In this document: piece after piece, positions 10,280 to 64,000 of the stretch
How positions within the stretch are numbered: the first letter of the stretch is position 1
Layout of the letters: every line of letters begins with the position of its first letter
Origin: Chara braunii
Lineage: Eukaryota; Plantae; Charophyceae
DNA: 64,000 nt
Direction: 5' to 3'
Assembly: GCA_003427395.1 (NCBI GenBank)
Contig: BFEA01000015.1
Span: 6,154,978 to 6,218,977, forward strand
Notes under the pieces: generated by a model
Databases searched by the model: none
What the model saw: only the letters and a program-made list of their open reading frames with translations
Told to the model about the DNA's origin: nothing
Translations under genes and position numbers: made by a program

Positions 10280-12260
10280 TTAGCAGGTCGATGCAGACGT
10301 GTCAGTCCATCCGTGTTGCCATGTCTCTCCGTTTTCCGATGAACGATATCGAAATCCTACTCCTGTAGTTGTACCGCCCATCGGCCAATCATGCCCATGT
10401 AGTTGGTGAGCTTCTTCAAAGCTAGCAGAGGCTCGTGATCCGTCACGAGGCGAAACTTCGGTCCGTAGAGATACGGATGGAAGTGTTGGATTCCCCAAAC
10501 TACCGCATAGCACTCGCCTTGAGGTGCTGAGTCATTCCGGCGTTCGTCAGGCACTGTGAGTAACGTGCACTCGATGACGTGTTCACGACCATCGTTCCCC
10601 TTCTGCGCTAAAATAACGGAAATGGCTTCCGGTTGCCAGTCCATAATGAGGATAAACTGCTTGGAGGGGTCCGGTCAGATCAAAATAGGAGCCGTCGCCA
10701 AGGCGTCTTTGAGGGTCGCGAAGGCCTGCTGGCACTCCGCGTCCCAGCTGAGAGGCTGGTCCTTCCATAGCAGATTTGTTAATGGTCGTGCAATCGCGGC
10801 AAAGCCCTTGATGAAGGGTCGATAGTACGACGCTAACCCCAAGAAGGCTCGAACCTGCGTCAGTGACATGGGAACCGGGGCTTCTTTCACTGCCGCAACC
10901 TTTCTTGAGTCCGGTCGTAGTCCTCCACGTGTCACGACGTAGCCCAAGAACGAGATTTCTAAGAGGAAAAATTTGCTCTTCTCGAGCGCAATCTTGAACC
11001 CAGCGTCTCTCAACGCGCCCAATGTCCATTCGATATGTTGCGTGTGCCCGTGATAGGTTTCCGAATAGACCAGGATATCGTCCATGTACACGATCACACA
11101 AAAGTTAATCATCCCTTGTGTCAGCCGTGTCTTGTTGACGAAATTCTGGAACGTCATGTTCATCGCTCGCTGAAACGTGGCAGGCGTGTTGCAAATACCC
11201 ATCGGACATCGAACCCATTGCCACGTACCTTCAAACAGTATGAAGGCCATCTTCGGCCGATCTTCCTCCTTTACCAGAATGTGATGGAAGTCATGCCGAA
11301 TATCAAACTTGCTAAAATAATTAGCGCATCCAATCGCATCCAACAAATCATCAATCAGGGGGAGGGGGTACACATCTTTGATCGTGATCTCATTCAGCTT
11401 GCGATAATCAATGTAAATGCGAATCGCTCCGTTTTTCTTCGGTACTAACACTACGGGAAATGACGAAGGTCCGGTGGCGGGTTCAATCCAGCCGCTGGCT
11501 TCGAACTCCCGAATTCGTTTGAGGGCCTTTTTGTGTTCAATCAAGGAATACCGGTAAGGTTTGCAATGAATTGGGGAGTGATTTCCTGTCTGAATTTCAT
11601 GTTGGATTAATAACGACAAGCCAATGTCAGTGTCTGTCACACTAATCGCTCCTTGGTATTCTGTTAGAATGCCTGCAATCACCCGGCTGGTCAGTTGCAT
11701 CGTTCTCGCTATCGTTTTGGGCGGTGGGTAGTAAACGCGCTGTCGTATTAATTTCAAGATCTCCGGATCATCTTCATCACTGCTATCCGCATCATTTGTC
11801 GAGGATTCTTCGTCCGCGGATTTTTCCCAAGAGATCATACGAAGGGTTCCAGCAAACATTGGCGAGACTTGGGGGACCGTGTTAATGGTAGTACGGAGGG
11901 TCAATCGCATGGGCACGCCGTAGGGTTTTCCTCCGGTATTTCGGAGGATAATCGATCTTCGTTCGAAATCCAAGTTCGCTCGTAGGGCCACAAGAGCGGG
12001 AAGTCCGAAAAGAACGTCGTACGTATTAACATCTAGTACTACGACATCCCCAAGCGCGTGCACTTTTCCTAACCGGAAAGCGACATTGGTCATTCTTCCC
12101 ACGGTCTTGATCTTTTCTTCATCTGCCGAAACGAGCTGATCTTTCTCAGTGAGCATGATCAGATCGTTTTTCCATCCTGCTTTCTTGACTACTTCTAACG
12201 AAATAGCCAAAACGGTCGCTCCTGAATCAATGATTGTGTTATATGGAATTCCCTAAATTT
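10280..12260 (-). pseudogene. Gypsy pol: aspartic protease, RT, RNase H (frameshifted)
   Basis: IIDSGAT near 12215-12235; IDYRKLN, YPLP, PMGICNTPATFQR, YMDD, FLG; RNase H segments DWQPEAIS, ECYAVVWGI, TDH. Confidence 0.95.
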
Positions 12261-12282
12261 CAATATCGCATTTTGCGGACTT

Positions 12283-13872: not shown

Positions 13873-14034
13873 ATTGGCAGCTATATTGGCTGCTCGTCGG
13901 TTAGCCGATCTGCTTCGGGTGACGATAGGGTCGCGTCTATGCGCGTTCCAAGGGCGAGGTCGCCCTCGGTTAGCTAGATCGCCTAATTACCGTGCTATCA
14001 ATCCTAAGACCTAGCCACGTGTCGGGCTCCCATG

Positions 14035-16380: not shown

Positions 16381-19300
16381 CCCCCGCCATGGAGAACCCA
16401 TACAATGAAGTATCCCTCCCTGTGAGTCTATGATCCGTCTATTGTTAAAAGAGGCTGTTGAAATACCTCTTCCTGTATGTTTTGGGGGACCTTATCAGAA
16501 AGAGGCAATCTGCGTTAATTCTTAAAGCACAATTACAGCATAGATAGGCCTGCAAGTGTCAGCATGAAACCCTCATCGCTTCGGTGGCCGCCGATTTTAT
16601 TTTTAACGGTGCCCCTGGTGGTGAGGCGCCTCCGAGTTTTGTTTGTGGCAACAAAAACTTTATGCAAGGCTGGGGCCGTGTACTAGCGGTTTAAGGAGGT
16701 TGGGGCAAAATGAATCCTTGCACAAGTTCACTCTTGCTACTATACGATCCTGATCATTGGTAATTTTCAACAAATGAGTGTGTCCCGCAGGATGGACAGA
16801 CGAAGAGCGATCTTCTAACCATATGAAGGGGTCAGTACCAGCTGGAAGTATGGGGTGTCAGTATCGCAATCTGTTCTAACGCCAACACCTTCCAAGGAAC
16901 TTGTGGGTTAAAACGTAATTGCTTAATCCATTGAACTTACAAGGTCATAACATGTGTGGTTGGGTCCAATATACCTAGGCCCCTTTTAGGGTGAGACTTG
17001 AAATGCTAATTGCCTTCCCACTCTGCTGATCACATTTTTGCATTCATAATTGTCACGCCATAGATATGCAACCACTTATCTTTGCAAGGGTTGCGGGGCT
17101 ATTGTATCCAAGGCCCAAATTGATGATTTGTACCACAGTGTGACTAGGATTACATTATTGATCAAAAGCGTTATACCTATTAGGGAGATGTGTTTGTCCT
17201 TCCATAGTGTCATCTTGGGCAACGATGGTAAGTTCCACTCTCATTGCTGCAGTTGCCTCCGAGTCGGCAGTTGATCCCCAGGTTTCCCCAGTGCAATCGA
17301 TGCTATATTAATCCGAGTGTTGGATAATGTCGGCGATCATGCCCTTCAGCCAATGCAGCTCCTTAGTAGTGTTAGGCCTCTCATTCGACTCTGATTGAAA
17401 AAGGCCCCAACTTTTATAAGTTCAATACCTCCCTACTTAAACTTTCGTCCCTTAAAACCCTGAAAAAAACTTTTGGCATTATTGGGAATCGCTGAGGGTC
17501 AGCGCCGCCTCAACGATGGATTGGTTTAATGAAGGAGTGTCGTAGTTGGGGGACCGGATTAAAAAATTTCCATTAATCATGCGAGGGGGAAAAAAACAAT
17601 ACTAGACAATCTGCTGAAAGAACTGGAACGTTAGGATGTCAAACTGTAGTCCGAACCTTTGGATGACACGACTTATCACAGACTATATGTCACCAGAGAA
17701 CAACTAAAGTAGTACAGACATATTTGGTCGGTCAAGCTGAGGTGTGGCATATTCAGGCGCGCATAAGGGAACAAGACACAAAGGGAACGGTGGCGAAAAC
17801 CTTTTACAGAAAGGTTAAAGCCAGGGCTAGGCAAGCAGCGGTATCTTCCCTCAACCATCCTTTCGATTGCTCTCTTCCCAATGCCACTAATGCATACTCC
17901 ATTGTCGACTACGAAACGCAATATTACCAAAGGTTTTACGCCTCTCAACAAAGGTTGGCAGAAGCAAGAGAATCAATGTTACAACGCCTGCCATTGCTGC
18001 CAACAATGTTGTCAACAACCCAACGTGAATTGTTGGACGTTCTACTGTCCACATACGAGCTGTTAGAAGCCTTGAGGGGAATGGAAGATGAAAAGACCCC
18101 GAGCCTGGACTCTTTTCCAAAAGAGTTATGACTAAAAAACAAGGTCACCTTCCAAGACAACATCGTGGCATATGTACACCCAGTCAAGTTCGAGGGATCC
18201 TTTCGGGGGTTAATTTCTCAGGGGGTGATCACGCTGTTGTACAAAAAAGGGGATAAAACTGATGTTAGGAAGTACAGGTCAATTACGCTTCCCCCCTTAC
18301 CTTACAAAATGGTATCTAAAGCACTCACTAACCGCTTGCTCCCACATATGAAACATTCGATCTTCCAGGATCAAACAAGATTTATGCCCCAACGCAACAT
18401 CCAGGATAACGTGCTCCTTGTAAACGAAACAATAAAATACGCCAAAAAGAAGCCACTATTTTGTTCATAGACTTTGAAAAGGCCTACGACTACATGGAAT
18501 GGGACTTCATCGATGTCGTTCTGCGAAAAATGAACTTCGGCGATTCCTTCAGAGCATGGGTGTCTATCACTCACAAGTCCACCACAACGTACATTATGGT
18601 CAATGACCACCTCTACCCTCCATTCGCCCTTCAAAGATCGGTGAGACAAGGGGACCCAGTGAACCCCCTCCTCTTTGTGCTAGTTATGGAAGCACTTGCG
18701 ACAATGATCCGGGCTAATCCGGACATTGAATGCATTGACATCCCGTAATTACCGTCGCGGTTAGTGCAAGTGACATCCCCATTCGCAGATGATCTGACGG
18801 TCCTCATTAATGCCTCAGAGGCATATCTAAGAGCGCTGACGGATACAATTTAGACATTTGTTGTAGCAGCGGACATGAAGGTTAACTGGGGAACCAAGAC
18901 AGAAGGATGGTGACTCTCTCCACAAGACACCCAACTCCCGCAGCACCCGTCAGTCAATTGGAGAAGGCGTGAAGAGACAATCATAATTTTGGGAATCCGC
19001 CTAACAGCAATGGGAACCCCACTAGACCATGGTCAGATACTAGTCCAAACAACCCTGCCAAGGTTGGCCAAATGAGATGGTCTCCCCACTTCATTGGTGG
19101 GAAGGGCATTAGCAATCAATAATGTCATTCTAACCACCGTATGGTACAAAACAACGTTCTGGCAGATCCCCAGGAAGCAATTGACGCATCTGCATGAGGC
19201 ACTGACAGCTTAGCTATGGAGAAACAACCATGCCCACACGAAATGCATCAAAAGGGTGGCATGGAAGCACATTACCCAACTGAAGGCGGTAGGGGGACTG

Positions 19301-20207
19301 GGTATCCTTGACCCAAGACACAGAATCAGAGCGCTGTTGTTTAAAATAATCACTCGCCTGCTGCTCGCTAACGACATCTCGTGGCTGCCCATCACTTGCA
19401 TCCAATTGTCAAACCTGCCCCCCCCCTCCCACCCGCACCACCCAATCCACCCTCTCACCTGGCTGGTCGATGCAGCATGGTCCTTACCAAGTCCTCCTCA
19501 GCATAAGAAGGATGGGCCGCCCCGTAACAGAGCCAGATGGGATCTTAAAAATGACCCTCTGTGGACCACAATGGTGGACCTGTGGCGACAGATGGGGCTA
19601 ACCCAAAAGCCCCCCCCCCTCAGATGGTATGAACTATGTAGATAGCCACTGTTCGGGAACCCGCACGTCACTTTCGTTGTCCGGCGGCTCTCACTGGCTC
19701 ACATGGGTGCAAAATGGGATTTTTACTCTGGGGGATTTGTGGGACACTCACACCCGAACATTGAAATTGCCACAACAGTTGCAGCCCATTTTTCAAAATG
19801 TTCAAAGATTCCAAGACAAACAGCAGCAACTGCATTCAACAATACAACTACAGTGGGTGGCCATCCTACAACAAGTACCGTCAGGACTAGGTGATTCAAT
19901 CCAGTCAAAACCAAATCCCCATGACTATCTACGTAGTACTTAATGGCACTCAAGAAGGTCTGCGGCTCCATGCCTTCGAACCGGACGTGCCAGAGGCCAG
20001 ATGGCCCCCCCTAAAGAGAGCCCCCGACCTAGACTGCACAAGGCCAGAAGAAGGACTCACAAGAATAAGCGTGGTGGGGTCCGAAGACACGGGTTTTTAT
20101 GCATACGAGATGTCTAACCCGGTGGGGGCCCTCCCCTTCGACCCTGATCAGTGGGAGTGGAAGGGCCGCAACCCAATCCCAATCTGGCAATACACAGTTA
20201 GATATAA

Positions 20208-20402
20208 GGGGAAACTACACGGTAGTCACAAAAACGAGTTATATTTGCAGTATGGGCCAAAATACCGTTTGCAATTGCAGTTCGGGCAATGTATACAACC
20301 CAGCTTTCTGGCCAGGTAGGGTGCCCGAAGTACAATTGCAAACTGTATCTTGCCCCAATATGCAATTATAACTTTTTTTTGTGACTCCCGCATAGTTACC
20401 CC
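20208..20402. mobile_element. Mutator-like MITE with 9-bp TSD TAGATATAA
   Basis: TSD at 20199-20207 and 20403-20411; long TIRs starting GGGG and ending CCCC. Confidence 0.88.
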
Positions 20403-21062
20403 TAGATATAAACAATTGCATAACCGCATGCAATCGACTTCGGTAGTCCAAAATAGATGGAGAAGGGACTCGCCGGTGGCAGAAGAAAACTTACGCCACA
20501 TCCCATGGGTCACCCATGCTCATATTATGCCAACCTCCCACAAGGCCCTACAGTGGCAAATTATACATCAATGCCTTCCGACCTCGGACTGGGTGACAGC
20601 GAGGTCCAACGTGGAACAGACAGGGGTTTCGTCCCCCATCTGCTCCCATTGCGGGCCCGATGCTCCTCAACGAAGGGCAGATCTTGAACACTGCCTTTTG
20701 GCATGTCCAATGGCAATAAAGATACGTCAGTGGTGGGACGCAATGTGGCACGCCCTTACAGGATCAGTATTTCACTGGGACATAGCCCTCATCCTTCTAG
20801 GGAAACGGAAAAGCATCCCACAGACTTGACACCGTTCCAAAGAAACATGTTTAAACACATGAGGATGACTGTCCTGATGGTCATATGGCGAATGAGGTGC
20901 TCGTCGGAGCGACAAGAAAGGACGTTAGGCTATCACCAAGCCAAAGCGAAACTCGTAGAAATTGTCCCGGCTAACTTGGTCAAAGCTGGTAGAAAACTGA
21001 TGGAAGAGGTAGCAGGAACTCCGGATAGAGAGAAAAAACAACAGGCTATCTCAGCATTTAAA

Positions 21063-21261
21063 CCACCAGTACTTGGCCTAGTTATCGGCCGCGGGCGATT
21101 CCTGTTAACGCGCCGGTAGTTGCGCGCTTCGGGACACCGAACCGTAATGGCTGGATGCGCCAGCCAAAATCAAAACGAAACGGTGCCCCGGCGGCTCGGC
21201 AAAACTTGGCTTGCAGGGGGTATCCCAGCTTGGCATCAATAGTTGGGCCAAGTACTGGTGG
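21063..21261. mobile_element. MITE with TIR CCACCAGTACTTGGCC at a duplicated TTTAAA/TTAA target (piggyBac-like)
   Basis: Perfect 16-bp TIR; TTTAAA at 21057-21062 and 21262-21267. Excision restores LINE ORF2 SAFKERWLDP. Confidence 0.85.
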
Positions 21262-21868
21262 TTTAAAGAGCGCTGGCTTGACCCCCACAGCAAGATGGCC
21301 GAAGTCCAGGAGACTGGAAAGCTTATCTGGAAAAATTGGGCGGTGCTCGAAGACCAATGGCCCTTCCGGCACCCAGACTGCTTCTCTCTCAACGATTCAA
21401 GTTCTATTGCATTTCATTGCATTGCACCGCTAATCATCTCCTATCAGTCCTATGATAGACGATATGTTTCACATGTTATGTAGGGGAAAGGTGTGGGTAG
21501 AGGGTTGGGAAGGGTTAAAAAGTCTGACAAGGAAACGATCAAAAGGGGGGTTGCCGGACAGGGTTGGGTTGACAGACAAGGGGTGCTTCAGGATGGGATG
21601 GGTGTTACTAGCCGCTCCAGGGGACAATGGAGTCCCAGACCAGTAAGACAAACAACCATGGCCCTGGGAAACAATGACCAACAACTGCTGAGCTACAAGA
21701 TGTATCAATGAGACGTTGGACCCGGTTTCCAGCAGGTGTTGCTCCCCACCAATGGATGGAGCAGCCCAACAGTCAAGCCCGCAATCCTGGCGGTTATTTT
21801 ACCACCGCTGGGATAGAGGGCTGACACAAGGTCTTTAAAATAAATAAATAAATAAACAGATAAATAAG

Positions 21869-22146
21869 GTAGGCTACCAGTCGGGCCGCCTGGGTCACCC
21901 CATTGTCCTGGACGTCCCAGCTGTGCAAGGACTAGGGAAGGTCCTAGCAAAACAATAAATATCAAAAAAATCCGAAAAACAACTATGTTATGCATAAAAA
22001 TAAACTGAACAACTTTTGCCGTAGGGTCACATCGAAATTCTTTACCATATTTAAAATAAAAAATAAAGTTAAAACAAAAAAAATATTTTTTTATTACTTT
22101 TTTGGCCCAGGTGGGCAAGTGTCCCCGGGCCACTCTGGTAACCTAG
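21869..22146. mobile_element. MITE with 8-bp TSD TAAATAAG inserted in the LINE tail
   Basis: TIR gtaggctaccag / ctggtaacctag; TSD at 21861-21868 and 22147-22154. The A-rich context weakens the TSD call. Confidence 0.65.
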
Positions 22147-22319
22147 TAAATAAGTAAATAAATAAATAAATAAAAAAGAAAAAATTTACACAATGGATGG
22201 GCCAGGTATTTTATCTAGAGGTCTGAAAATTCGGATGTTGGTCTTAAAGGGAATGCCACTCCTTTTTTTTCCTTCCTCTGTGACCTGCAGCAGGGGACTT
22301 TTTTTTCCTTTTAGTGAGC

Positions 22320-22356
<37 letters not shown>

Positions 22357-24785: not shown

Positions 24786-25123
24786 AGCAACCATTTTGTC
24801 AAAGTGCCATTTTGAAAATGAACTTTTTTTTTTTTTGAACGAATTGAAACCGATTCAATTGACCTAAAAAATATTAAAATTTTTAGCTAATGAGGATTTG
24901 GCGTTCTTAAAACGTTGTACCCCCTGGACTTCAGTTACGTCCAGATATATAAGAACGTCGGACTCGCTGCACTCCAGCTAAGTGCAGAAACATTTAGGGG
25001 GTACGACATTTTAAGAATGTCAGACCCTAAAAAACTAAAAACTAAGATATTTTTCTTGCCAATTTAGTCGGTTTGAATTTCGTTCGAAAAATAAAAAACG
25101 TTTATTTTGATGCAATGGTTATT
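24786..25123. mobile_element. Decayed fold-back MITE related to 299-519
   Basis: Ends agcaaccattttgtcaaa / ttttgatgcaatggttatt; flanks ctta / ttta; inner inverted aaaacgttgtacccc / ggggtacgacatttt. Confidence 0.75.
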
Positions 25124-49554: not shown

Positions 49555-52485
49555 ATGGCCCCGACGTGGAAAAAAAAGCAAAAATTGCCAGCAATGATCT
49601 TCTTCCAGGGAGCCATGAGGCACCATGCAGCACAAAGCCTCTCGGCACAATCAGGGACACAGTCGAAGGCCAGCTCATCCACGATGACTGCTGGAGCTAA
49701 GCCACAGACACAACAAACGCACGGGGAAACCCAACTCCAACATGCACACGGGGTAGAGGGTCATCCACAGTCCCAACAGACAGAAGTGAGGGAAGGCAGT
49801 CAAGGGCAACCAAGATCCCAACAGAACCTGCAAGAAACTGNNNNNNNNNNNNNNNNNNNNNNNNNNNNNNNNNNNNNNNNNNNNNNNNNNNNNNNNNNNN
49901 NNNNNNNNNNNNNNNNNNNNNNNNNNNNNNNNNNNNNNNNNNNNNNNNNNNNNNNNNNNNNNNNNNNNNNNNNNNNNNNNNNNNNNNNNNNNNNNNNNNN
50001 NNNNNNNNNNNNNNNNNNNNNNNNNNNNNNNNNNNNNNNNNNNNNNNNNNNNNNNNNNNNNNNNNNNNNNNNNNNNNNNNNNNNNNNNNNCACGGGGTAG
50101 AGGGTCATCCACAGTCCCAACAGACAGAAGTGAGGGAAGGCAGTCAAGGGCAACCAAGATCCCAACAGAACCTGCAAGAAACTGACACACGCACCTGGGC
50201 ACAAAGAGTCAAGAGACCTTTCAGCCAAGAAAAGCTAAATATTAAAAGACAGTCCAGAGGTGAGTCAAAAGAAGAGAACCTGGCGATCCTCCTAGGCAGG
50301 CTGACTTCAGCCAGTGCGTTTTTTTATGACAAGGCTCCTCACAGCATCGGAGAAATTGGTGAGGGAGCGAGGGGGGAAAAAAGTCATGATCACACACCTC
50401 CAGGAAGCGGGCCTGGAGGTGAGGGACAGGATCTACACAGAACACGCAACCAACTAAGTGTTTCACGACGATGCGAGCTACAAGTCTACGAACGACAAGA
50501 TTGGATGGATCAGGAAGAAATTGGAGGCGTTAAAAGGAAATAAGGAAATCGCAGCAGATTCATTCCTCATCCACCCGGTTTCGAAAACAATCTTTACGGT
50601 GCTCAGCATGTGCACAGAAGATAAAAAAACGATGGACAGATGGAGGAAGATACGCTGTGATAGATCTGAAGTCCGACTTTACCCGTGGTCCCCCCAAAAA
50701 CGTGCCACACCGGAGGAGCGGAGAGACAAACTGATGGCGGACTACTTTTATGTTGAATTTCATCATATTCCCATCGAAATTCAAGCAATGTTTGTACAGG
50801 ATTTCGGAGAGAGATTCAATATTATTGACTTTATAGACCCCCTTCCTCGTTATGGAAGGGACGACTATATGATGTTGGCACTAGACTATCCTCCAAACCA
50901 GCCGTTCTCATTGGACGATGTGATACCATATTGGGTAGTTGACCAGGAATATAAGGTCTACACCGCACACAAACTTAGACCGTGGTGCATGAAATGCAAG
51001 GCATACAGCCACCTATGCACCGAACAGGTTTGCTCGCAACACCTAGGCAGGAAAGCGAGGATCACAAGGAGACTGACTCGGGACCCTTTCAAAATAGACA
51101 GTTGAAGAACACTCGACCCCGGACAGGAAGGCTGGGTCTTCATAGACCAGGAGGAGGATGGAAAGACGAAGGGGTGGATATCGGAAAGACAAACAAAACT
51201 GGAATGGAGCACTAAACCGCTCGAGGAGTGGGTATCTCCGAAGCCGGTGGAGGTACACGTGAGTGCCTCAACAGATACACCCAAGAAAAACTTTGGGACG
51301 TTGGCTGCACAAGAAAAAGTGAAACAGAATGAACAAAATAGGTACGACGACAGGGCTGTGGGAAAAGGAAAGGAAAAAGAGCCAGATCCAGAACAGTATA
51401 TGGACATCAACTCACTCTCAATAGATGTCCGACCAGGGGGGGCCGGGCCAGATGGATGGGGGGTCATCCAAGCAAATCAGCACCGAAAACCGGTTTGGGC
51501 CACTTGAGGTGGAAGAAGGGGAGGGAGAGGAGAAAGTGGAAGACTTGGGGGACGACAATGCAGGCCTGATGGAGCTAAGGAAGACGAAGAAAAGAACGCG
51601 GAAAAACAAAAAAAAGAACCAGGACGAAGAACTAGGAACCGTGGAAGAGGAAAATCAGGATCAGGCTAAGAAAATGACTGAACATGCAAAGTCGGCAGAA
51701 AGCCGAGATCCATTCAAAGAAGTCTTTGGATCTCGTCCAATGGACTGGGATGCATCCCCCCTAGCGCACCCCTCACCCTTACCTCCCCCACCGGACGTTA
51801 TCATGTCTGAGTGTTTCCCAGAAAGAACCGATGAGTCTAAAAGTGACAACGGAAAAAACTCAGGGGAGGGAGTCGAACACACAGCAGGCTTAGCAGACCA
51901 AGCCCAGGCTACAGTAGAGACGAAATTGATGGAGGTGACAGACTGGCTGATATTGCGATTGCAGGAGAGGCACCCGGAGAAGACAACTGAATTCTGGGAC
52001 AAATCCTACGTAGAACTTTTCGACCTGCTGGACTCACGCCCCAGTTTGAAAGAAGTTCTGCAAAACGGGGTACCACAAAAGATCCACTTTGCAAGGATCA
52101 TGCAAAAATTTTTGGCAAAAATCCTAGCAGGATTCTCATGCCCGCAGGCCGACGAAGAAGAAAGCGGAACAACAAAAGAGACAAAACAGGCCGCTACACA
52201 CACCCCACACACCCCAGTCCCCCACAAAGATATCACGCCCCCCCCCTACCGCAGGCCCCAGAATCATCAGCAGAGGGGGAAGGGATGCAACAAGATGGGG
52301 AACAGAGGACAAGACTGAAAAATAAAGGGAAAGTAAAGGACGAAATAACAACTAAGCGAAAGCGACTGAGGCACCTGGCGGAGAGAGGACAACATGAGCA
52401 CAAACTTTCCACAGAGGGAGTCTTGGTTCTTCCGATCAGAAAGAAGGAAGGAAAAAGGGAATTGGGCATGACTAAGGCAGTGGGA
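49555..52485 (+). pseudogene. LINE ORF1-like (gag-like) pseudogene, cut at 52486 by another element
   Basis: TWAQRVK motif, knuckle CMKCKAYSHLCTEQVC and a long charged low-complexity tail. Sequence character changes abruptly at 52486. Confidence 0.6.
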
Positions 52486-52583
52486 AGCAGCGATTTCGTT
52501 AAAACGGACATTTTTTAATTTTTGCGCGAAATTGAAAGTCCTTTTTTTGCGATTTTTTGTATGTAATTTATTAAGTATGTTAT

Positions 52584-52721
52584 GGGGTAAGGGGGTAAGG
52601 GGGTAAAGGGGTAAGGGGTAAAGGGGTAAGGGGTAAGGGGTAAGGGGTAAGGGGTAAGGGGTAAGGGGTAAGGGATAAGGGATAAGGGGTAATATGGGTA
52701 AGGGGTAAGGGGTAAGGGGTA
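52584..52721 (+). repeat. (GGGGTAA)n tandem repeat
   Basis: Roughly 19 partly degenerate units. Confidence 0.95.
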
Positions 52722-52923
52722 GCAATGGTACGAGCTCAACAAAGTAACACAGTAATGGTGTTCAATCGGGCATGTTGCGCTGTTTCTTTGTTAAATACAT
52801 CCGAACATATTCATGGGTGTCTATCTACTATAGCTGATAAACTCTTTACATTTGCACAATATGAACAAGTGATTTTCTTTGATAATGTCGTCTATCATAT
52901 GTCCTTTGTTGCACAAGTCACCC

Positions 52924-53781
52924 CTACTTCGGTGTGACAAGTACATCTAAAGCGATCCGTCCCCTTATATCCTGGATGTCGTCGAAAGAGAAGTTGAACG
53001 GCGGGAGAAATCCTCTTGCCAATAGTGACGCGTATGTTAGCATAAACACACCGCATTCGTTAATGTCGCGTTGTCTAGGAATGCCTGACACATTCCATAT
53101 ATGGTTGAAATCTTTTGTATCTACCACCTTACCCTGTTCAACTGATCTTTCGAACAAAAATCTTTCGAAACCACCTGTCACTTTCCTTGCGAATTCTTTG
53201 TCAGGGGTAAGTGAGTCGTAGTACTCTATTTTCTGGCGTCTCAAGTCCGCTATTACTAGTGTCCAATGGTTGGACATCCGAACATGGAATAAAGCTATTA
53301 TTAAGTCTACGTCGCCCACATCGATATCTGTCATCCACTTTCGCACTGCGCTATATTTGTATTGCATATCGTCATCGAACAATTTCGTGAAGAAGAAGGA
53401 ACTAAAAATTGTTGTTATCGGGATGCGCCCTTTTCCTTCTACTACAGTTCCGTCTTGTCCACTGTTACACTCGCGATGGCTTATCCGACACATGTTGTCA
53501 AGCCTAACGAGGTTCAAATAAAAGTTAACTATTTCGTTGTTCAACCATTTGTCTTGAAGCAATACCAAGCTCAAATCATGCCCGGTTAGTGTTAGTTCTT
53601 CTTTTGTTGCCCCGTTGTACGTGGATGTCCAGACCGTTCGGTTCTCCACTTGCACTGAATCTCGTAAACGTTGTACCGCGGCCTTCTCCTTCTCCGACAA
53701 TTTATCCGTTGCTAAGTGGATCGTCCATCTCTGTTTGCATCTTCGTACTTCTTCTATGTTCCGTCTTTCTGCACATGACAA
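52924..53781 (-). CDS. Ulp1/SENP-family (peptidase C48) SUMO protease domain
   Basis: WLNNEIVNFY, FSSFFFTKL, NHW, YYDSL, PRQRDINECGVF: the His-Asp-Cys triad and oxyanion Gln are present. Confidence 0.93.
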   Translation of the reverse strand: MSCAERRNIEEVRRCKQRWTIHLATDKLSEKEKAAVQRLRDSVQVENRTVWTSTYNGATKEELTLTGHDLSLVLLQDKWLNNEIVNFYLNLVRLDNMCRISHRECNSGQDGTVVEGKGRIPITTIFSSFFFTKLFDDDMQYKYSAVRKWMTDIDVGDVDLIIALFHVRMSNHWTLVIADLRRQKIEYYDSLTPDKEFARKVTGGFERFLFERSVEQGKVVDTKDFNHIWNVSGIPRQRDINECGVFMLTYASLLARGFLPPFNFSFDDIQDIRGRIALDVLVTPK

Positions 53782-54248
53782 TGCATTATGCGTCAGCGTA
53801 AGATATCAATATTGGGGCTTGCCATATTTGCATGCCCGAAACGGCCTTCAAAATTTCAATTGCTAAATCCTGCCAACATGATACTATAACGAGTATACAT
53901 AAACACCCCGACCTCCACCCTTCCGCGTAATATATCGATCAATGAAGCTTATCGCAATCTATGGTGGTTATCGGTAACCCTGCTTCCATCTGTTCACTGT
54001 TGATCATGTTCATTACTATTGGTAAAATTTTCAAAATAAGTTCATAATATTCATAGTACGCTACAAGATGGCACAACAAGTTCTCAGAAATCTTAGGTGT
54101 CATTTGCACATGACAGGCAAAGTGCCCCATATAGTGCATTTTCATATGCCTTCATTATAAAACTGTACCAAGCACGTGCACACAATTTAGTCCACACACA
54201 CAGAACCTTGCGCTGCTAACGAGTCAACCTCTGCGTTCTCAAACCCAG

Positions 54249-54269
54249 ACACACACATACACACACACA

Positions 54270-54343
<74 letters not shown>

Positions 54344-54358
54344 NNNNNNNNNNNNNNN

Positions 54359-54410
<52 letters not shown>
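54249..54410 (+). repeat. (CA)n microsatellite
   Basis: Direct reading of the sequence. Confidence 0.98.
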
Positions 54411-54414
<4 letters not shown>

Positions 54415-54476
54415 AATCTACGTATAGATATGGGTCACCCTCTATGAACGGTAGTGTAATTTCGAGAACTGCACTG

Positions 54477-57400
54477 TCACAATAACACTTCCAATAACAC
54501 AAGAGTATAACCTATAACGTGTAGACACCATTCCTGTCTCACATAGTTTTCAAACCTACCGAGTTGCGACAACACATCTATATAACCTGAACTGTGAAAA
54601 CGTCCAATCACTGGCCTCGTCGACCATCTCAGTTGTTGCACGTCCTTTTCGTGGTCACCTTCAACTCTTGGCGTATTGTTGTCATCTTTTTGTTCCTTCT
54701 CTTGGATCATATCCTCGTTCGTACTCTCCGATGTCATATCTATTATGGAAATGTGTTCGCGGGATCCCTCACCTTTCGTTGCCTGCTCTGTTGTTGTTGC
54801 CAAATCCTCTTGTGGCACCTTCACCGCCTGACTTTCATCATCCTGGCCATCATCGGTCTCCATCATCTCAGATACGCCTTGCCTCGCCGCCATTGTCACT
54901 ACAAGAGACCCGAAAGATCCAACGTTTGTTGTCCCATCGTTGACCCCCCCTGTTGGCTGCTCTGTCAATGCGCCCGACTCCATGTCATCGTCGTCTTTGC
55001 GTATCATTGTGGAATCCCCAATTGCGATTCTCGGAGTGCTTTGTTGAGCATATGCTTGCTGCTGTTCATCCTTCGCAGGCTGGATCCCCTCTGGCAATCG
55101 GAATGATGGTGTTAGATGTGATAACGTCCTGAGTCTTCAGAGAGTTGATGCTATCGTTTCCTTGTACTGCTGAAGCCAGTTCGATTTTCCAATTGATGGA
55201 GCCGTACGATACACTTGATGCAAGGTCGTAGAACTTTGTGCTGAATTCTAGCTTTTTGTTCGCACGCAGATGCTCGAACAAAGCTTTCCCCTTTGCCGCT
55301 ATAGCTTCCTCGCTTGCACCGGCGTTTTCTTCCAAAACTCGCCGAAAAATTTGCGTTTTCGTCACGCTGTGCCATATCGCAGAGTCCTTTTTTTCCTTGA
55401 CGACCCACCCTCGGTCTCTTGTCTTCACAGCCATCTGCCACTTGCTTGCAAACACACACGGTTCGAACACACCCTCATGCCAGAGAATATGATGACCCCA
55501 ATCCTCCTCCGATGACTCTTTGTACTTGTCCTGCAGCAAGTATGACACTGAAGGGTCTGGGGCAAAGCCTTGAGGCAACGGTCTTCCTGGCACGAGCTTC
55601 GGCGTGAGTGCTGCCATATCCAACTCTTCGTCTTCATCGGTGTCCATGGACATGAGTGTTCGTTGCTCGGCCTGCGGTGCATGTGTCGATGATGGCCCAG
55701 CTGTCGGCGGGGCCATTGCACACCCATTCTCTCCTCCCCCTGTGTTGCCCTGTGAGTTAATTATCCCCTCACTCGCACCCACCGGGTTTGTTGGTACACC
55801 ATTCCTTTCTCCCCTTCTAGTCATTCTTGTTTCCACATTTCCCTCACTCGCACGTGTTGCTCCCATACTCGAACTCGCCTTCTCTGCAGGTCCGTTGGTG
55901 CTCCCTTGCGGCTCCTCGCCACGCGCTCCCTCCGCCGCACCTCGTGCCGCGCGCGACGGGATGTCCAGGTCGGAGTCTGACGTGTCTTCGTCGCAATCGA
56001 TGTTGTTGAAGTTGCCGGCTTTACGTGCCAAGTCTGCATAGCCCCGGCTTGACAGTGCTCTTTTCTTCATATTGAAATACAGATGCTCACAACGTGCGAC
56101 AAACATGTGGAAAGCACCCATGTGCGAGCCATGGAGTTGGCTTTTCCTGATGACGTAGTCGTTACCAACCGCCGACTGTGGAGCGTCACCGAACAAGTAA
56201 GCCCACACTTTCTCCCTCTTTCTACCGAGCTTATAGTATATGTCCCGGTCCTTCCCGCCATGAATCTCATCAGGACCACCTAAACGCCTCGGCACCTTCC
56301 TCGCCTTGCGTCAGGGATGCGGTCGCGTTCCTCGGTTCATTTTTCGTCGGTGAGGCCGTTTTTGCTGTATCTTTCCAAGATGGTCGTATAACCGATGAAG
56401 AAGTCAACGTTCCACTCTTCCTTTGACCTCCCCTCGACCTTCAACAATATGTAGTTGAACATACAGACTATATATCTCTCACCCCGAATATATTTTACCA
56501 GGTCCGCCATGTTGCATCTACCACGAGGTACCGTACGTGATGTCACGATGACATCACCACGCGTTATGTGATGCAGCGCCACTTGCTTCTCTCTCGCTGT
56601 CATATCACCAAACAACTTAAAGATTGAGGGCGTCAAGTCCAGTATAGACATTGTTGCGCCTTGCGACCCCTTTCTGGCCTTGATGCAGTGGTACAAGACT
56701 TTTTTGTCGGAGTTGTCATTGAGGAAGTATTGCCCAGGCAGCCTTCCTTCCACTTTCCGCGGCAGATCGACGTATCTCACACCGTCGATTCTTGGCAATA
56801 GTCTTTTCTCGTACATGCCAAAGAATTTGTCTACCAGTGGCCATACCGTCTCGCCGCACTGCGCAAGATTCATGTATCCGCGCATCTTGTTCGTCCAGTC
56901 CTTGCAGTAGTCGTTCTCCAGGGACAAGTTCATGAGACCGGAGTCAGGTGTAATTTTGCAGGCGGCGTTCATGAATGCTTCCCACTTCTTTTTCCGTTCC
57001 ATTCCCTCGACGTCATTCGGGGACATGGTGCCCGGAGGACGGATCCGGTCTTTCCTCTTATCCCAAAATCTTCTGATTTGTCGCACAGACGACGAAAACG
57101 ATCTCGGGATGGAACGCTCCTCCCTCGTGTTGTCGAATGTCGAGACATACGGATATCCTCTCTTTTTGTCGTCTTCAAAGTAGACAACGCGTACGTGAGA
57201 GTACGACCTCAAGCCGTACACTTTCTCGGCCGGTGACTTGTCCTTAATGAGTATGTTCATTGCCTCAGCCGTGTGCTGGCCAGCAACAGCATACCAGTGG
57301 TATGTATGAGCCAGTGCGACGTCGAATTCCTTCGGTGCGATCCGTCTGCCTTGAGAGCCGTCCCCGTTCGGTACGATGGGAGCCAGGATGAAAGTCATGA

Positions 57401-59042
57401 TATCCCACTTCCCGTTGGTTTCCTTAGCCTCATAATGGATCGCATCCTATATGGACTGTACCAACGTTTTGTCCAATGTTCTATGGTTGAAGAGGATGTC
57501 ACCTTCAAGAATTGGCAAGATCTTCGTTACATCCACTTGAATGTGTTCCCGATTCTTCTTCGCAAACCCATCCTCATCGAACTCCAAAAAGAAGCACCGT
57601 GTTGTGTCGATGGCGTCATAACGGGTGTCAGCGGAAGGTTGTGTCGGTTCCGACGGAGCCCTTGGAGCAACCCCTTCGGCGTCCTCTCCGGAGTCACCCT
57701 CATCGACCATCTGCTTTCTTTTCAGTGGACGTTTCTCCGCTTTTGTCGTCCTGGTTGACGCCTTCCCTTTGCGGTTCTTCACGTTTTCTGCGACCGCCTC
57801 TTGAGAAGCTCTGAGTGTCTCTCGAGATGCAGCGACAGTGAGTCTCTTCGCAGCGCGTTTATCCGCCATCGCCGTTTGACTTATTGAAGAATGCCGCTTC
57901 CTTTTGTGCACACTGCCCTCCGACCAATCTCCTGTTCCCTCATCGACCTCCACATCAGGTGACGCTTCTTGCCCTCTATCCTCATCATCGCCAGGATAGG
58001 CATCATCGTTTTCTCCATCGCCCCCATAGTCCCCCTCGTCGTGTTGTCGAGACTCCCCGTCATCGCAGTCGTGCATAGATTCCTCACGATCCTCTCCCTC
58101 TCTCTCTCTCTCCCTTTTCTCCTCTTCGACATCGTCCTCTTCGACCCCACATTCCTCATCGTCGACGGCATGATTACCCTGCGGATGCTGATCAACACCA
58201 ATCCCAGGATCATCCTCCGTTTCCTCGTCCGATCCTTCGCTTATCTCCTGCGGGGCAGCCCTTCCCCGTATGCACCACCATAGTCTTTCTGGCGGGTAGT
58301 AGACGAAGCAGTTGACAAGGCCTTCCTTCTGTATGTAATGACAGGGGTGCCTTCGTCTTGCCGGGTGGACGGCTGAGACGGTCCTGCACATTCCCTCTGG
58401 TGGGTCGATTCCACAGGAGGACCACGAGCCCCTTCGTCAGGATGATGACGAGGCTGGGTCCGTTTGTTGCGGCGCCGGCTTCCACCCGCCGACGTCTGCT
58501 GTGTTGGAAAACAAAGTGGCGTCATCTGTCTCTCCCTCTTTGCTATGCCGGGGAGATCCTTGTCCGGCGTGTCAAAAGGCACGAGTGTCGAATGCATACA
58601 ATGCCCGGCCTGTACCGTGGGATTGTTTCCGGATTTCCTGTACCCGTTCGTTTTGGCGAGGAATTTCACAGGGCCAAGCATCATCAACACACTCCCGTCT
58701 TCTTTCGGGGAGACATCGAAGGCTTTCATAGTAATCGCCTTACCTCCATACCCCTTGAGAAAATTGTAATCAAGGCTGACTTTATTGTCGACCTTCGCAT
58801 GGTCCCCTCCCTATTCTTCGTACACCGTTGTGAGGAAAAACCTCCTGAACTTCCGTCCATGCCCGTCCGCCCTCTCATCCTCGGATTTAATAATCCCTCC
58901 AACACAGAACCAGTTGTCACCCGTGGCGGTCTTCAGAAACAAAGCAGCCCCACATCCTGCCTCGTGTAGGCCCCCCACCCAATCAAGGGCCCACTCCCTA
59001 TCTCTACACATTGAGCAGATCTTATAGACTCTCTTTTCCTGG
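54477..59042 (-). pseudogene. Long decayed ORF with acidic linkers and a ParB/Srx(DGQHR)-like segment
   Basis: Consecutive minus-strand ORFs; 57447-58391 and 56337-57398 share a frame across one stop. Motifs FNHRTLDKTLVQSI and WYAVAGQHTAEA. Confidence 0.55.
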
Positions 59043-59065
59043 ACAGTAGATGCTCTCAATGCGAA

Positions 59066-59841
59066 ACGAGCGGGGGTACGGCGTTTCGAGAACATCGCAC
59101 CCCCGCTCCCTTCCCCCCCCACCGCGAATCGGCGGGGGTATGGCGTTTTCAAAATGTCGTACCCCTTCGGCTCTGTCCACATACAGGGCCTAGGGGGTAC
59201 GGCTCTGTTACGATAACACCGCACCCCCGTTCCCTCCCCCCGCCTCGAACCGGAGAGGGTACTGCGTTCTCGAACCTCCGGACCCCCTCCGGTTCCCGGG
59301 AAGCGAAAGGAGCGGGGGTGGAACGCCGTACCCCCCGCTCCCTCCCTCGCTGACAACCGGAGGGGGGGTACGACGTTTTCAAAACGCCGTACCCCCTCCG
59401 GTTCCCGGCGGGGGAGGGAGCGGGGGTACGGCGTTTCGAGAACGCTGTACCCCCGCTCCCTCCCCCGCCGAGATCCGGATGGGTACAGCGTTTTCAAAAT
59501 GCCGTACCCCCACTCCCTCCCCCGCCGAGAACCGGATGGGTACGCCGGACCCCCTCCGGTTCCCGGGAAGCGAAAGGAGCGGGGGTACGGTGTTCCGAGA
59601 ACGCCGTACCCCCGCTCCCTCCCTAGCTGACAACCGGAGGAGGAGTACGGCGTTTTCAAAACGCCGTACCCTCTCCCGTTCTCGGCGGGGGAGGGAGCGA
59701 CGGAGCGGGGGTACGGCGTTCCGAAAATGTCGTACCCCCGCTCCCTTCCCCGCCGTCAACAAGAGGGGGTACGGCGTTCCGAAAACGCCGTATCCCCACC
59801 GGTTATCGGCGGGGGCTGGAGCGGGGGCATGGCGGGCCGGA
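59066..59841. repeat. Array of ~33-bp palindromes GGGGGTACGGCGTTTTCAAAACGCCGTACCCCC with GC-rich spacers
   Basis: About ten copies are visible before the gap. Confidence 0.9.
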
Positions 59842-60082
59842 NNNNNNNNNNNNNNNNNNNNNNNNNNNNNNNNNNNNNNNNNNNNNNNNNNNNNNNNNNN
59901 NNNNNNNNNNNNNNNNNNNNNNNNNNNNNNNNNNNNNNNNNNNNNNNNNNNNNNNNNNNNNNNNNNNNNNNNNNNNNNNNNNNNNNNNNNNNNNNNNNNN
60001 NNNNNNNNNNNNNNNNNNNNNNNNNNNNNNNNNNNNNNNNNNNNNNNNNNNNNNNNNNNNNNNNNNNNNNNNNNNNNNNNNN

Positions 60083-63000
60083 AATAAAAAAAGTGCACAT
60101 TTTTAATATTTTTCGAAAAAAAAAAGGTGGGGAGATTCGCGAATCTCCCCCCACCTCATTTCCCCACCAATCACCTAGCCAATGGTGGGGAAAGTGACGA
60201 TCTACCAACCAATCAAGAGATGAGACCTTCTGTCACATTTTTCAAAAAAAAAAAGGTGGGGGGAGATTCCCTACCTTTTTCCCCCACCAATTATCTAGCA
60301 AATGATGGGGAAAGTGACGATCTACCAACCAATTATAAAATTACACATTTTTAACATTTTTCGAACAAAAAAAAAGGTGGCCCCACCTCATTTCCCCACC
60401 AATCATCTAGCCAATGGTGGGGAAAGTGACGATCTACCAAACAATCAAGGGATAAGATCTTTTTTGACATTTTTCGAAAAAAAAAAAGGTGGGGGGAGAA
60501 TCGCGAATCTCCCCCCACCTTATTTCCCCACGAATCATCTACTAGCCAATAGTGGAGAAAGTGACGATCTACGAACCAATCAAGGGATGAGACCTTTTTT
60601 CACGTTTTCTGGAAAAAAAAAAGGTGGTGGGAGATTCGCCCACGTTTTTCCCCCACCAATCATCTACGCGATGGTGGGGAAAGTGACAATCTACCAACCA
60701 ATCAAAAAAATGCACATTTTTGACATTTTTCGAAAAAAAAAAGGTGGGGAGATTTGCGAATATCCCCCCACCTAATTTCCCCACCAATCACCTAGACAAT
60801 GGTGGGGGAAGTGACGATCTATGAACCAATCAACGGATGAGACATTTTTTCACATTTTCCGAAAAAAAAAAAAGGGGGGGGGAGATTCGCGCCCCCCACG
60901 TTTTCCCCCAACCAATCATCTAGCCAATGGTGGGGAAAGTGGCGATCTACCAACGTTTTTCCCCCACCAATCATCTAGCCAATGGTGGGGAGAGTGACGA
61001 TGTACCAACCAATCAAAAAAGTGCACATTTTTGACATTTTTCGAAAAACAAAAGGAGGGGAGATTCGCGAATCTCCCCCCACCTCATTTCCCCACCAATC
61101 ACCTAGCCAATGGTAGGGAAAGTGACGATCTACCAACCAATCAAGGGATGAGACCTTTTGTCACATTTTTCAAAAAAAAAAAGGTGCTAGCCAATGGTTG
61201 GGAAAGTGACGATCTACCAACCAATCAAAAAATTACACATTTTTGACATTTTTCGAACAAAAAAAAAGGTGGGGTTTCCCCACCAATCATCTAGCCAATG
61301 GTGGGGAAAGTGACGATCTACCAAACAATCAAGGCATGAGACATTTTTTGACATTTTTCGAAAAACAAAAAGGTGGGGCGAGAATCACGAACCTCCCCCC
61401 ACCTTATTTCCCCACCAATCATCTACTAGCCAATAGTGGGGAAAGTGACGATCAACGAACCAATCAAGGGATGTGACCTTTTTTCACATTTCCGAAAAAG
61501 AAAAGGTGGGGGGAGATTCGCGAATCTCCCCCCACGTTTTTCCCTCACCAATCATCTACGCGATGGTGGGGAAAGTGACGATCTGCCAACCAATCAAAAA
61601 AATGCACATTTTTGACATTTTTCGAAAAAATAAAGGTGGGGAGAATTGCGAATCTCCCCCCACCTTATTTCCCCACCAATTATGTACTAGCCAATGGTGG
61701 GGAAAGTGACGATCTACGAACCAATCAAGAGATGAGACCTTTTTTCACATTTTCTGAAAAAAAAAAAGTAGATTCCCCACGTTTTTCCCCCAACAATCAT
61801 CTACGCGATGGTGGGGAAAGTGACGATTACCAACCAATAAAAAAAGTGCACATTTTTAATATTTTTCGAAAAAAAAAAGGTGGGGAGATTCGCGAATCTC
61901 CCCCCACCTCATTTCCCCACCAATNCCAACCAATAAAAAAAGTGCACATTTTTAATATTTTTCGAAAAAAAAAAGGTGGGGAGATTCGCGAATCTCCCCC
62001 CACCTCATTTCCCCACCAATCACCTAGCCAATGGTGGGGAAAGTGACGATCTATGAACCAATCAAGGGATGAGACCTTTTTTCACATTTTCCGGAAGAAA
62101 AAAGGTGAGGGGAGATTCTCCCCCCACGTTTTTCCCCCACCAATCATCTAGCCAATGGTGGGGAAAGTGACGATCTACCAACCAATCAAAAAAGTGCACA
62201 TTTTTGACATTTTTCGAAAAACAAAAGGTGGGGAGATTCGCAAATCTCCCCCCACCTCATTTCCCCACCAATCACATAGCCAATGGTGGGGAAAGTGACG
62301 ATCTACGAACCAATCAAGGGATGAGACCTTTTGTCACATTTTTCTGAAAAAAAAAAGGTGGGGGGAGATTCGCGAATCTTGCCCCACCTTTTTCCCCCAA
62401 CAATCATCTACGCGATGGTGGGGAAAGTGACGATCTACACCTTTTTCCCCCACCAATCATCTAGCCAATGGTGAGGAAAGTGACGATCTACCAACCAATC
62501 TGAAAATTACACATTTTTGACATTTTTCGAACAAAAAAAAAGGTGGCCCCCACCTCATTTCCCCACCAATCACTGAGCCAATGGTGGGGAAAGTGACGAT
62601 CTACCAAACAATCAAGGGATGAGACCTTTTTTGACATTTTTCGAAAAAAAAAAGGTGGGGGGAGAATCGCGAATCTCCCCCCACCTTATTTCCCCACCAA
62701 TCATCTACTAGCCAATGGTGGGGAAAGTGACGATCTACGAACGAATCATGCGATGAGACCTTTTTTCACAATTTTTGAAAAAAAAAAAGGTCGGCGGAGA
62801 TTCGTGAATCTCCCCCCACGTTTTTCCCCCAACAATCATCTACGCGATGATGGGGAAAGTGATGATCTACCAACCAATCAAAAAAGTGCACATTTTTGAT
62901 ATTTTTCGAAAAAAAAAAAGGTGGGGAGATTCGCGAATCTCCAATAACCTAGCCAATGGTAGGGAAAGTGACGATCTGCCAACCAATCAAGGGATGAGAC

Positions 63001-63290
63001 CTTTTTTCACACTTTTCGAAAAAAAAGGTGGGGGGAGATTCGCGAATCTCCCCCCACGTTTTTCCCCCAACAATCATCTAGCCAATGGTGGGGAAAGTGA
63101 CGATCTACCAACCAATCAAAAAATTACACATTTTTGACATATTTTGGGGGGAAAAAAAAGGTGGGGGGAGATTCGCAAATCTCCCCCTACCTGATTTCCC
63201 CACCTATCATTTACCCTATGGTGGGGAAAGTGACGATTTACCAACCAATCAATAAATGACACATTTTTGACATTTTGCAGAAAAAAAAAA
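60083..63290. repeat. ~100-bp satellite-like tandem array with internal palindromes
   Basis: Repeated ccccaccaatcatctagccaatggtggggaaagtgacgatcta and gagattcgcgaatctc. Confidence 0.95.
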
Positions 63291-64000
63291 GTGGGGGGAG
63301 AGAAAAGGGGAGACCTTCCCATCCCACATACCTTTGCCAGTCATTGTGGAATCAACTGAGGGCACAACGCTGCTCTCCTCTTCGTGTTGATGTTCTCTAC
63401 CGCTTTCCTTTCCAATTATCCTCCTCTTATCGACTCATCCAGCACCGATGCCTCTCTTCTCACATGTTCATCTCTCTTCTATCATCTCCTTCTCTTCTCC
63501 TCTCTAGCCGTCCTCCAACGAAGAACAAGAACCGTGTAGCACGATAGAATCGAGACCAAGCACACGATATGAAGCGCAAGCTGCGCTGCGCAGGTTTCAA
63601 GGAGGAAGGAGGACAAGAGGAAGTGTGGCCGAAATCGGCGGTAGCAGCGGCGGAGAAGAGGCCGGTGACTATCCAAAGAGGCCGGTACTCAGCAAAAAAG
63701 AGGCCAGCACCAGCCCCGAAGAGGTCGGTACCAACCTTGAAAGAGGACGGTACCCCCCAAAAAAAAAATGCAGGCAGGTACCAACGAAAACAATGCCGTT
63801 ACCAACGAAAAAGAGGCCGGCACCCTTTTTTTTTTTTTCCGTTCATCACGCGGGCCTGACGCAGGAAACGTCCGGCTTACCAGCACCGGCTTGCAGAACA
63901 CCAACCTCGGCGCACAGCACACGCCACTTTGCTGCAGTGTCATTCGCGAGTGTGCACCTGTGCTCGAACGCGACGTCCGCCTGCCCGCGACTGCCTCCGC

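Follow-up and report, generated by a model that had tools for sequence, protein, structure and literature searches.

A probable giant Sola1 transposon of Chara braunii with a Ulp1 protease gene, a ParB-like accessory gene and palindrome arrays

The first descriptions of giant algal transposons that combine ParB-like cargo with inverted-repeat arrays next to it date from 2025 and concern one brown and one red alga. The brown algal element, Sola1-1_Ec32 of Ectocarpus, is 21.5 kb long, with AACCG-CGGTT termini, a terminal inverted repeat (TIR) of 282 bp and a target site duplication (TSD) of 4 bp, and supplement file 2 of the same article gives the sequence of the transposase in print (Genome Biol 2025, PMC12477816). 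In the red alga Bostrychia moritziana, the Plavaka accessory protein PAG3 has an N-terminal ParB-like domain that was detected by HHpred only, with 7BNR as the best match (bioRxiv 10.1101/2025.02.11.637652; Curr Biol 2025). Tandem inverted-repeat arrays adjoin the PAG3 gene, and in the authors' proposal PAG3 would bind and modify the transposon that encodes it (bioRxiv 10.1101/2025.02.11.637652). Here we analyse a stretch of 64,000 nucleotides of the charophyte Chara braunii (contig BFEA01000015.1, positions 6,154,978 to 6,218,977, hereafter the window), the last part of which, from position 52486 onwards, appears to be occupied by an element of related design.

Our reading, to which we assign a probability of roughly 0.85, is that the sequence from 52486 to at least 64000 represents the cargo-side part of a dead giant (~25 kb or more) cut-and-paste transposon of the Sola1 superfamily. 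Going inwards from its end, the element presents a TIR, a (GGGGTAA)n tract, a Ulp1 gene, an accessory gene of ~1,300 codons with a predicted ParB/Srx fold in its N-terminal part, and two palindrome-rich arrays. The DDE transposase, on the other strand, and the second end of the element would lie beyond the window.

Boundary, relatives and termini of the element

The window is collinear from 52488 to 64000 with a paralogue in the same species, L001 (BFEA01000437.1, the genomic locus of the protein GBG83370.1), at 90-100% identity across the unique parts. Similarity to L001 begins at 52486, and the flanking DNA is unlike on the other side of this point: the window reads ...GGGA followed by AGCAGCG, and L001 reads ...TTTC followed by AACAGCG. 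Because the flanks of the two copies are unrelated outside the terminus, 52486 is a real boundary of the element, in agreement with the original prediction, made from the letters of the window alone. The same prediction let the feature end at 59841, which proves to be the edge of an assembly gap of 241 N (59842-60082). The gap interrupts the first palindrome array, and the element resumes beyond it as a second array and a unique spacer (63302-64000), reaching at least 64000 by its collinearity with L001. The spacer matches L001 down to position 4821 of that locus and leads off the window toward the transposase gene on the opposite strand.

No transposase of this element is present within the window, as had been noted before. 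Past the L001 position that corresponds to window position 64000, the opposite strand of that locus carries an open reading frame (ORF; L001:242-1066, minus strand) with a match to the DDE transposase family DUF7869 (E=4.5e-60). DUF7869 transposases are also encoded by two further copies, L002 and L003. Compared by eye with the printed transposase of Sola1-1_Ec32, the L001 protein shows the same core motifs in the same order: C-x-(I/M)-D-G-x-x-Q, VQxDNxxxxNKNxY and GHTHxxIDxxFS. The family agrees with Sola1-1_Ec32 in transposase motifs, in AAC ends and in duplications of 4 bp, and, as judged from these sequence features, is best placed in the Sola1 superfamily.

The order of the cargo genes is maintained in copies that have diverged to as little as 30% protein identity. 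L003 contains the DUF7869 ORF on the minus strand, followed by the arrays, the ParB-like gene and the Ulp1 gene, both on the plus strand, and a terminus 290 bp past Ulp1. In L004 the large gene is followed by Ulp1 and then by the terminus. Protein identity is ~49% for L003, where it refers to the large gene, and for L004. L005 (~30% identity) retains the large gene followed by Ulp1. L006, a contig of 7.7 kb from a Joint Genome Institute (JGI) metagenome (3300064063, contig Ga0598241_0004250), encodes an uninterrupted ParB-like homologue of 1,419 aa (~28-30% identity) and then, on the same strand, a Peptidase_C48 gene of 376 aa; it is the sole relative seen outside Chara and the sole one free of stops. 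The conserved order in L001, L003, L004, L005 and L006 bears out the earlier claim that the element includes the genes for Ulp1 and the ParB-like protein.

The Ulp1-side TIR occupies 52486-52545 on the plus strand. It starts with AGCAGCGATTTCG, the first bases of the element at 52486 being AGCAGCGATTTCGTTAAAACGGAC, and is delimited by the boundary against L001 and by alignment to the other copies and to the ends of related transposable elements of the miniature inverted-repeat type (MITEs). The family consensus terminus starts with AAC, and a start of the form A(A/G)C is found in the window, L001, L002, L003, L004 and the MITEs. About 55-60 bp are conserved among the Ulp1-side ends (window, L003 and L004), the transposase-side end of L002 and the ends of the MITEs. 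L002, which was found through its 75%-identical transposase, carries the same terminus in inverted orientation ~3.8 kb past the transposase ORF. An inverted partner of the family terminus, such as the original prediction proposed to look for beyond 64000, is present in that copy, on the transposase side.

Two of the related MITEs lie within the window. The first (299-519) is a near-perfect inverted repeat of 221 bp with family termini and a central GTCC-type palindrome, and the second (24786-25123) contains two GTAC-type palindromes. The terminus at 52486 aligns over ~55-60 bp with both ends of either MITE, and their flanks read GAAG/GAAG and CTTA/TTTA, respectively, both as reported earlier. 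Four MITEs with family ends, two in the window and two in L002, were checked for duplications of the target. Perfect 4-bp duplications flank the MITE at 299-519 (GAAG/GAAG) and one of the L002 MITEs (16771-17066, CAAA/CAAA), and the flanks of the MITE at 24786-25123 match at three bases out of four. The termini together with the MITE flanks support the earlier inference that the element is a large, cargo-carrying TIR relative of MITEs with 4-bp duplications.

Behind the terminus lies the subterminal (GGGGTAA)n tract that had been noticed before, with 18.9 copies at 52584-52721 (plus strand) according to Tandem Repeats Finder (TRF). The tract is identical in L001, and a remnant is found at the same place in L003. 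A telomere-like nature of the tract was considered and rejected: neither TTTAGGG nor TTAGGG yields its unit by permutation, and in L001 and L003 alike the tract is a constant component of the element's interior. Over the first 256 bp (window 52488-52743, L001 23767-24022), the entire (GGGGTAA)n tract included, the window copy and L001 are 100% identical, and they are otherwise 91-96% identical. This perfect identity may reflect gene conversion or an assembly artefact of collapsed repeats.

The DNA interrupted by the element contains, at 51425-52518 on the plus strand, an acidic/basic ORF of 297 codons followed by a frame with stops. The ORF has no Pfam hit, and the label of LINE ORF1 (from a long interspersed nuclear element, LINE) given to this flank in the original prediction is left without Pfam support and could not be confirmed. 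We searched for an empty site through a second copy of the flank (50400-52485) and found none in the window, L001 or L002. Elsewhere in the window, positions 6300-13900 (minus strand) hold a Ty3/Gypsy-type long terminal repeat (LTR) retrotransposon with zf-CCHC (12286-13872), RVT_1 (10678-12210) and Integrase_H2C2 plus rve (9027-10064) domains.

Cargo genes, the predicted ParB/Srx fold and the palindromes

The gene nearest to the terminus is an uninterrupted ORF of 285 codons at 52924-53781 on the minus strand, which encodes a C48 cysteine protease of the Ulp1/SENP type. It matches PF02902 (Peptidase_C48) with E=2e-19 and a score of 70.8 bits, the gathering cut-off being 20.7, and human SENP1 with E=1.5e-20. 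In the alignment with SENP1, all four residues of the catalytic site (His, Asp, Gln and Cys) face their counterparts, so that the catalytic residues are intact, as had been claimed. Amino acid identity of the protease amounts to 93% with L001, 52-54% with L003 and L004, and 31% with L005, and the ratio of non-synonymous to synonymous substitution rates (dN/dS) against L001 is 0.38. The frame opens right after the stop at 53782-53784 and contains no ATG for ~95 codons; the first 60 codons are nonetheless conserved in L003 and L004. The conservation of this ATG-less stretch suggests a spliced upstream exon, and both an upstream exon and a lost N-terminus are possible explanations for the missing initial ATG.

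The accessory gene extends on the minus strand from an ATG at 59011 to a stop at 55066, as delimited by the ORF list and tblastn, and comprises ~1,315 codons or ~3.95 kb. Two in-frame stops (58811-58813 and 57447-57449) and two frameshifts (near 58250-58265 and 56310-56316) break the reading frame. The original prediction of a decayed ORF of ~4.5 kb holds with respect to the decay and overstates the length. Given two stops and two frameshifts, the window copy cannot make the accessory protein. A tblastn comparison with the proteins P0001-P0027 shows the window to be collinear from 59053 to 55309 with GBG83370.1 (P0002, 1,318 aa). A 206-codon ORF at 54477-55097 was not counted as coding: it lies past the conserved region and has a dN/dS of 1.0 in comparison with the paralogue.

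The relatives of the accessory gene are numerous. A phmmer search among 1.84 billion representative sequences, with a 353-aa piece translated from 56340-57398 (minus strand) as the query, returned 88 cluster representatives, the best of them 83-89% identical. Among 20 relatives looked up, 19 are 'hypothetical proteins' of C. braunii, and the remaining one is from a JGI metagenome. Scans of the pieces of the long gene and of full-length relatives against Pfam, NCBIfam and PADLOC produced nothing relevant. In two C. braunii gene models, P0001 and P0007, the ParB-like transposon gene is fused to LINE endonuclease/reverse transcriptase or protein kinase domains; these fusions are probably chimeric gene models spanning nested repeats. 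The conserved pieces of the accessory gene show a dN/dS of 0.54-0.67 against L001. The persistence of both cargo genes together down to 30% identity makes a stronger argument for constraint than the dN/dS values.

The two cargo genes are separated by a non-coding spacer with an (AC)n microsatellite (54249-54414), which includes a gap of 15 N (54344-54358). According to the ORF list, the gap is crossed by nothing but translations of the dinucleotide repeat. Both of its sides match L001 in unchanged order, and the distance between the long gene and Ulp1, 1.28 kb in the window, is comparable to the ~1.1 kb of the ungapped sister copy L003, which has the genes in the same order. Because the flanks are collinear with L001 and the ungapped L003 keeps the gene order, the gap most likely hides repeat units only, and no reading frame depends on it. 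In L001, the region from the large gene to Ulp1 (15580-22348) is interrupted by two gaps of N and includes 1.7 kb (20063-21767) without a counterpart in the window. The extra 1.7 kb reflects either inserted DNA or faulty scaffolding at the microsatellite in which the window, too, has its gap.

The ParB/Srx fold was recognised in a structural model of the orthologous uninterrupted ORF of L001 (L001:11331-12551), which was predicted with 39 family sequences and has a mean predicted local distance difference test score (pLDDT) of 85.8. Foldseek is led by ParB, Noc, sulfiredoxin, KorB and PadC, all weakly, the best match being ParB with E=7e-3 and a probability of 0.94. A wide VIA search, independent of Foldseek, places members of the ParB/Srx superfamily in the top eight positions with Z-scores of 6.5-4.1, followed by the next entry at 3.5. 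In a second VIA comparison the top 19 entries are all ParB, Noc, KorB, PadC, SbnI or Srx, with Z-scores of 8.0-3.3, and the first unrelated chain scores 3.1. The highest structural entry is 7BNR. The cleanest match is Bacillus subtilis ParB (6sdk), with a Z-score of 7.3 and a root-mean-square deviation of 2.9 Å over 95 residues, and covers model residues 32-176.

Transferred from L001 to the window by alignment, the domain lies approximately at 57119-57602 on the minus strand, contains the motif YAVAGQHT and is split by the in-frame stop at 57447-57449. We accept a ParB/Srx fold for this region as predicted by the model, and the ranking of ParB/Srx-superfamily chains ahead of all others agrees with the earlier description of the gene as ParB-like. 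The 353-aa piece of the window itself, when modelled, finds no fold match by Foldseek or by the wide VIA search; it starts after the in-frame stop and is left without half of the ParB domain. A Protein Atlas search with a 409-aa piece was blank, and the region that follows the ParB/Srx domain in the L001 model has no structural match.

We also looked for a methylase in the accessory protein, where the Ectocarpus account would lead one to expect it. There is no PF01555 hit in 28 members of the family, the catalytic motif (D/N/S)PP(Y/F/W/H) occurs in none of 39 aligned members, and a search of the family profile against the Protein Data Bank (PDB) was blank. A language-model search with residues 480-1300 of P0027 retrieved clusters of PF01555 alone, at scores of 0.75-0.77; these are below the threshold and constitute a lead only.

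Upstream of the accessory gene, the first array consists of 11 copies of a 31-bp palindrome (GGGGTACGGCG, nine bases, CGCCGTACCCC), located by a pattern scan at 59073-59796. The copies are spaced by ~59 bp and begin 60 bp upstream of the ATG. Shuffled sequences contain such palindromes at a mean of 0.1, which leaves the palindrome array of the original prediction well founded. L001 has 12 palindromes at the corresponding place and one more near the transposase. L003 and L004 possess a variant palindrome of the GGGGGTCCGGCGTTCC type at the same place, with GTCC replacing GTAC. The second array (60083-63301) consists of ~25 tandem units of 112-135 bp, detected by TRF, each with short palindromes of its own, and is collinear with L001 8821-5516. 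Across the 64-kb window, palindrome-dense 1-kb bins are found at 59-63 kb only, upstream of the ParB-like gene. The retention of ends and palindromes by MITEs devoid of coding sequence fits a cis-acting role of the palindromes and does not identify the protein that would bind them.

Proposed mechanism and alternative readings

As a Sola1 element of this composition, the transposon would be cut by its transposase at the AAC ends and inserted by way of a cut staggered by 4 bp. The ParB-fold protein would dock on the palindromes of the element itself, in the way ParB docks on parS. Together with the protease it might act on chromatin or on SUMO-dependent silencing at the element, or might help to assemble the transposition complex. 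MITEs that have the ends and one or two palindromes could use the proteins of the element in trans.

A more specific version of this mechanism is tentative, and we regard it as rather unlikely in its full form: the ParB-fold protein and the palindromes would constitute a family-specific self-recognition pair that brings Ulp1 to the chromatin of the element and removes SUMO-dependent silencing, and the MITEs that keep the palindromes would hijack this system. The palindrome type is relevant here in that it varies with the family, being GTAC in the element described and GTCC in L003 and L004. Such self-recognition, if true, would mean that a close algal relative of land plants harbours an anti-silencing system encoded by a transposon and addressed by sequence. 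The ParB-fold domain and the 31-bp palindrome offer a concrete pair for binding tests.

Several observations weigh against the interpretation of the locus as a Sola1 transposon with ParB-like cargo. The assignment to Sola1 consists of a match to a Pfam DUF family and a comparison of motifs with the printed sequence by eye. The transposase and the second end of the window copy are situated beyond the window, out of view together with its TIR pair and TSD, and one MITE of the four, at L002 20213-20537, shows no duplication in its flanks (AAAT/GAAC). The fold comparisons have middling Z-scores, with a maximum of 8, though the list of matches is coherent and specific. The ParB-like domain is not recognised by sequence in Pfam (pieces and 28 relatives), NCBIfam, PADLOC or sequence and profile searches of the PDB. 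The signature arginine of the GxxR/DGQHR motif is absent: the window has AGQHT, L001 has DGQHT, and the family consensus is GQHNAxAAR. The dN/dS values between the window copy and L001 are derived from few changes in two dead copies.

Among the alternatives, the one that survives best, improbable as it seems to us, accepts the Sola1 transposon and considers the ParB-like gene and Ulp1 to be useless captured host fragments, as in Pack-type elements, and the palindromes to be ordinary subterminal repeats bound by the transposase. Arrays of transposase-binding subterminal repeats are common in large TIR elements, the genes of the window copy and of L001 both hold stops, and the MITEs retain palindromes while encoding nothing. 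Against this view, both genes stay together and in order across lineages down to 30% protein identity, with 88 cluster representatives, and the catalytic residues of Ulp1 are intact. The arrays adjoin the ParB-like gene instead of the termini, the palindrome differs between sister families, and independent reports describe similar combinations of ParB and arrays in transposons of red and brown algae.

The view of the original prediction, that the element represents a new, unclassified TIR superfamily with a transposase of an undescribed kind, has become very improbable. It could draw on the lack of a transposase in the window, on the accessory gene without a Pfam hit, and on 4-bp non-TTAA duplications and A(A/G)C ends that are unlike those of MULEs (Mutator-like elements), CACTA and Zisupton. 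Against it, the paralogous and sister copies L001, L002 and L003 hold a DUF7869 DDE transposase within the same termini, and the transposase core, the AAC termini and the 4-bp TSD are shared with the published Sola1-1_Ec32. The statement that A(A/G)C ends combined with a TSD of 4 bp fit no known superfamily was wrong because the Sola superfamily had not been considered; the AACCG termini and 4-bp TSD of Sola1-1_Ec32 are a combination of this kind. The prediction had allowed that an ordinary MULE or CACTA transposase would overturn it. A known transposase was indeed found, which agrees with this in spirit, and it is of the Sola1 type and not of the MULE or CACTA type. Membership in MULE, CACTA or Zisupton is not indicated: the linked transposase is DUF7869/Sola1-like, and the TSD measures 4 bp, against 9, 2-3 and 8 bp, respectively.

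A chance pile-up of a half-MITE, a stray Ulp1 pseudogene, an ORF of a foreign element and satellite DNA, which might be entertained in a window so rich in repeats (the LTR retrotransposon at 6-14 kb, the MITEs) and in assembly gaps, some of them inside the element, is hardly credible because the synteny is conserved across copies: L001 repeats the parts, unchanged in order and orientation, at 91-100% identity, and the order persists in L003 and L004 (~49% protein identity), in L005 (~30%) and, in part, on the metagenome contig.

Comparison with described systems

The concept of a giant transposon with ParB cargo was published in 2025, and the Chara element is a variant of that design and not a new class. 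With Sola1-1_Ec32 it shares the giant size, AAC-type termini, the 4-bp TSD, the core motifs of the transposase (by eye) and a large ParB-like accessory gene on the strand opposite to the transposase, an arrangement seen here in L001 and L003. The differences concern the accessory protein, the remaining cargo and the ends. A DNA methyltransferase domain is recognisable in the Ectocarpus protein, which measures 1,104 aa, whereas the Chara family displays neither a PF01555 hit nor the motif. The accessible part of the Ectocarpus report describes no Ulp1 gene or palindrome arrays for Ec32 (PMC12477816), and the TIR has 282 bp in Ec32 as against ~55-60 bp conserved in Chara.

The likeness to PAG3 lies in the accessory gene. 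Both proteins have an N-terminal ParB-like domain detectable by remote methods only, 7BNR is the top match for both, and inverted-repeat arrays are adjacent to both genes. The carrier of PAG3, on the other hand, is a Plavaka/EnSpm element and that of the Chara gene a Sola1 element, and the second domain of PAG3 is a putative 2-oxoglutarate (2OG) oxygenase. The partners differ as well: PAG3 is accompanied by PAG1 and PAG2 (N6-methyltransferase plus SET), and the Chara protein by Ulp1.

Ulp1, a C48 SUMO-type protease, is a familiar cargo of large plant TIR transposons, namely Kaonashi-type MULEs and CACTA elements. The C48 cargo is common to these and to the Chara element, whereas the transposase superfamily and the TSD (9 or 3 bp, compared to 4 bp) are different, and we know of no ParB-like partner in MULE or CACTA elements that carry Ulp1. 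We did not find the Chara family, the constant Ulp1 partner or the lack of a methylase motif in the literature searched; the search was limited and their absence from the literature is unproven.

Bacterial ParB/parS, KorB and Noc resemble the Chara system in the N-terminal ParB/Srx fold, as modelled, and in the clusters of short palindromes that adjoin the gene, in the manner of parS. They differ in that the Chara gene is a eukaryotic transposon gene in which the signature arginine is replaced (GQHT or GQHN), and no ParB helix-turn-helix is recognisable in it by sequence.

The window copy is dead and partial, and its value is that of a further family member and of a link between the family and its MITEs. 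For the annotation of C. braunii, the family implies that dozens of 'hypothetical proteins' are transposon cargo genes. Set beside the brown and red algal elements, the large and diversified Chara family extends the ParB-cargo design to the streptophyte lineage, with a SUMO protease as the constant partner.

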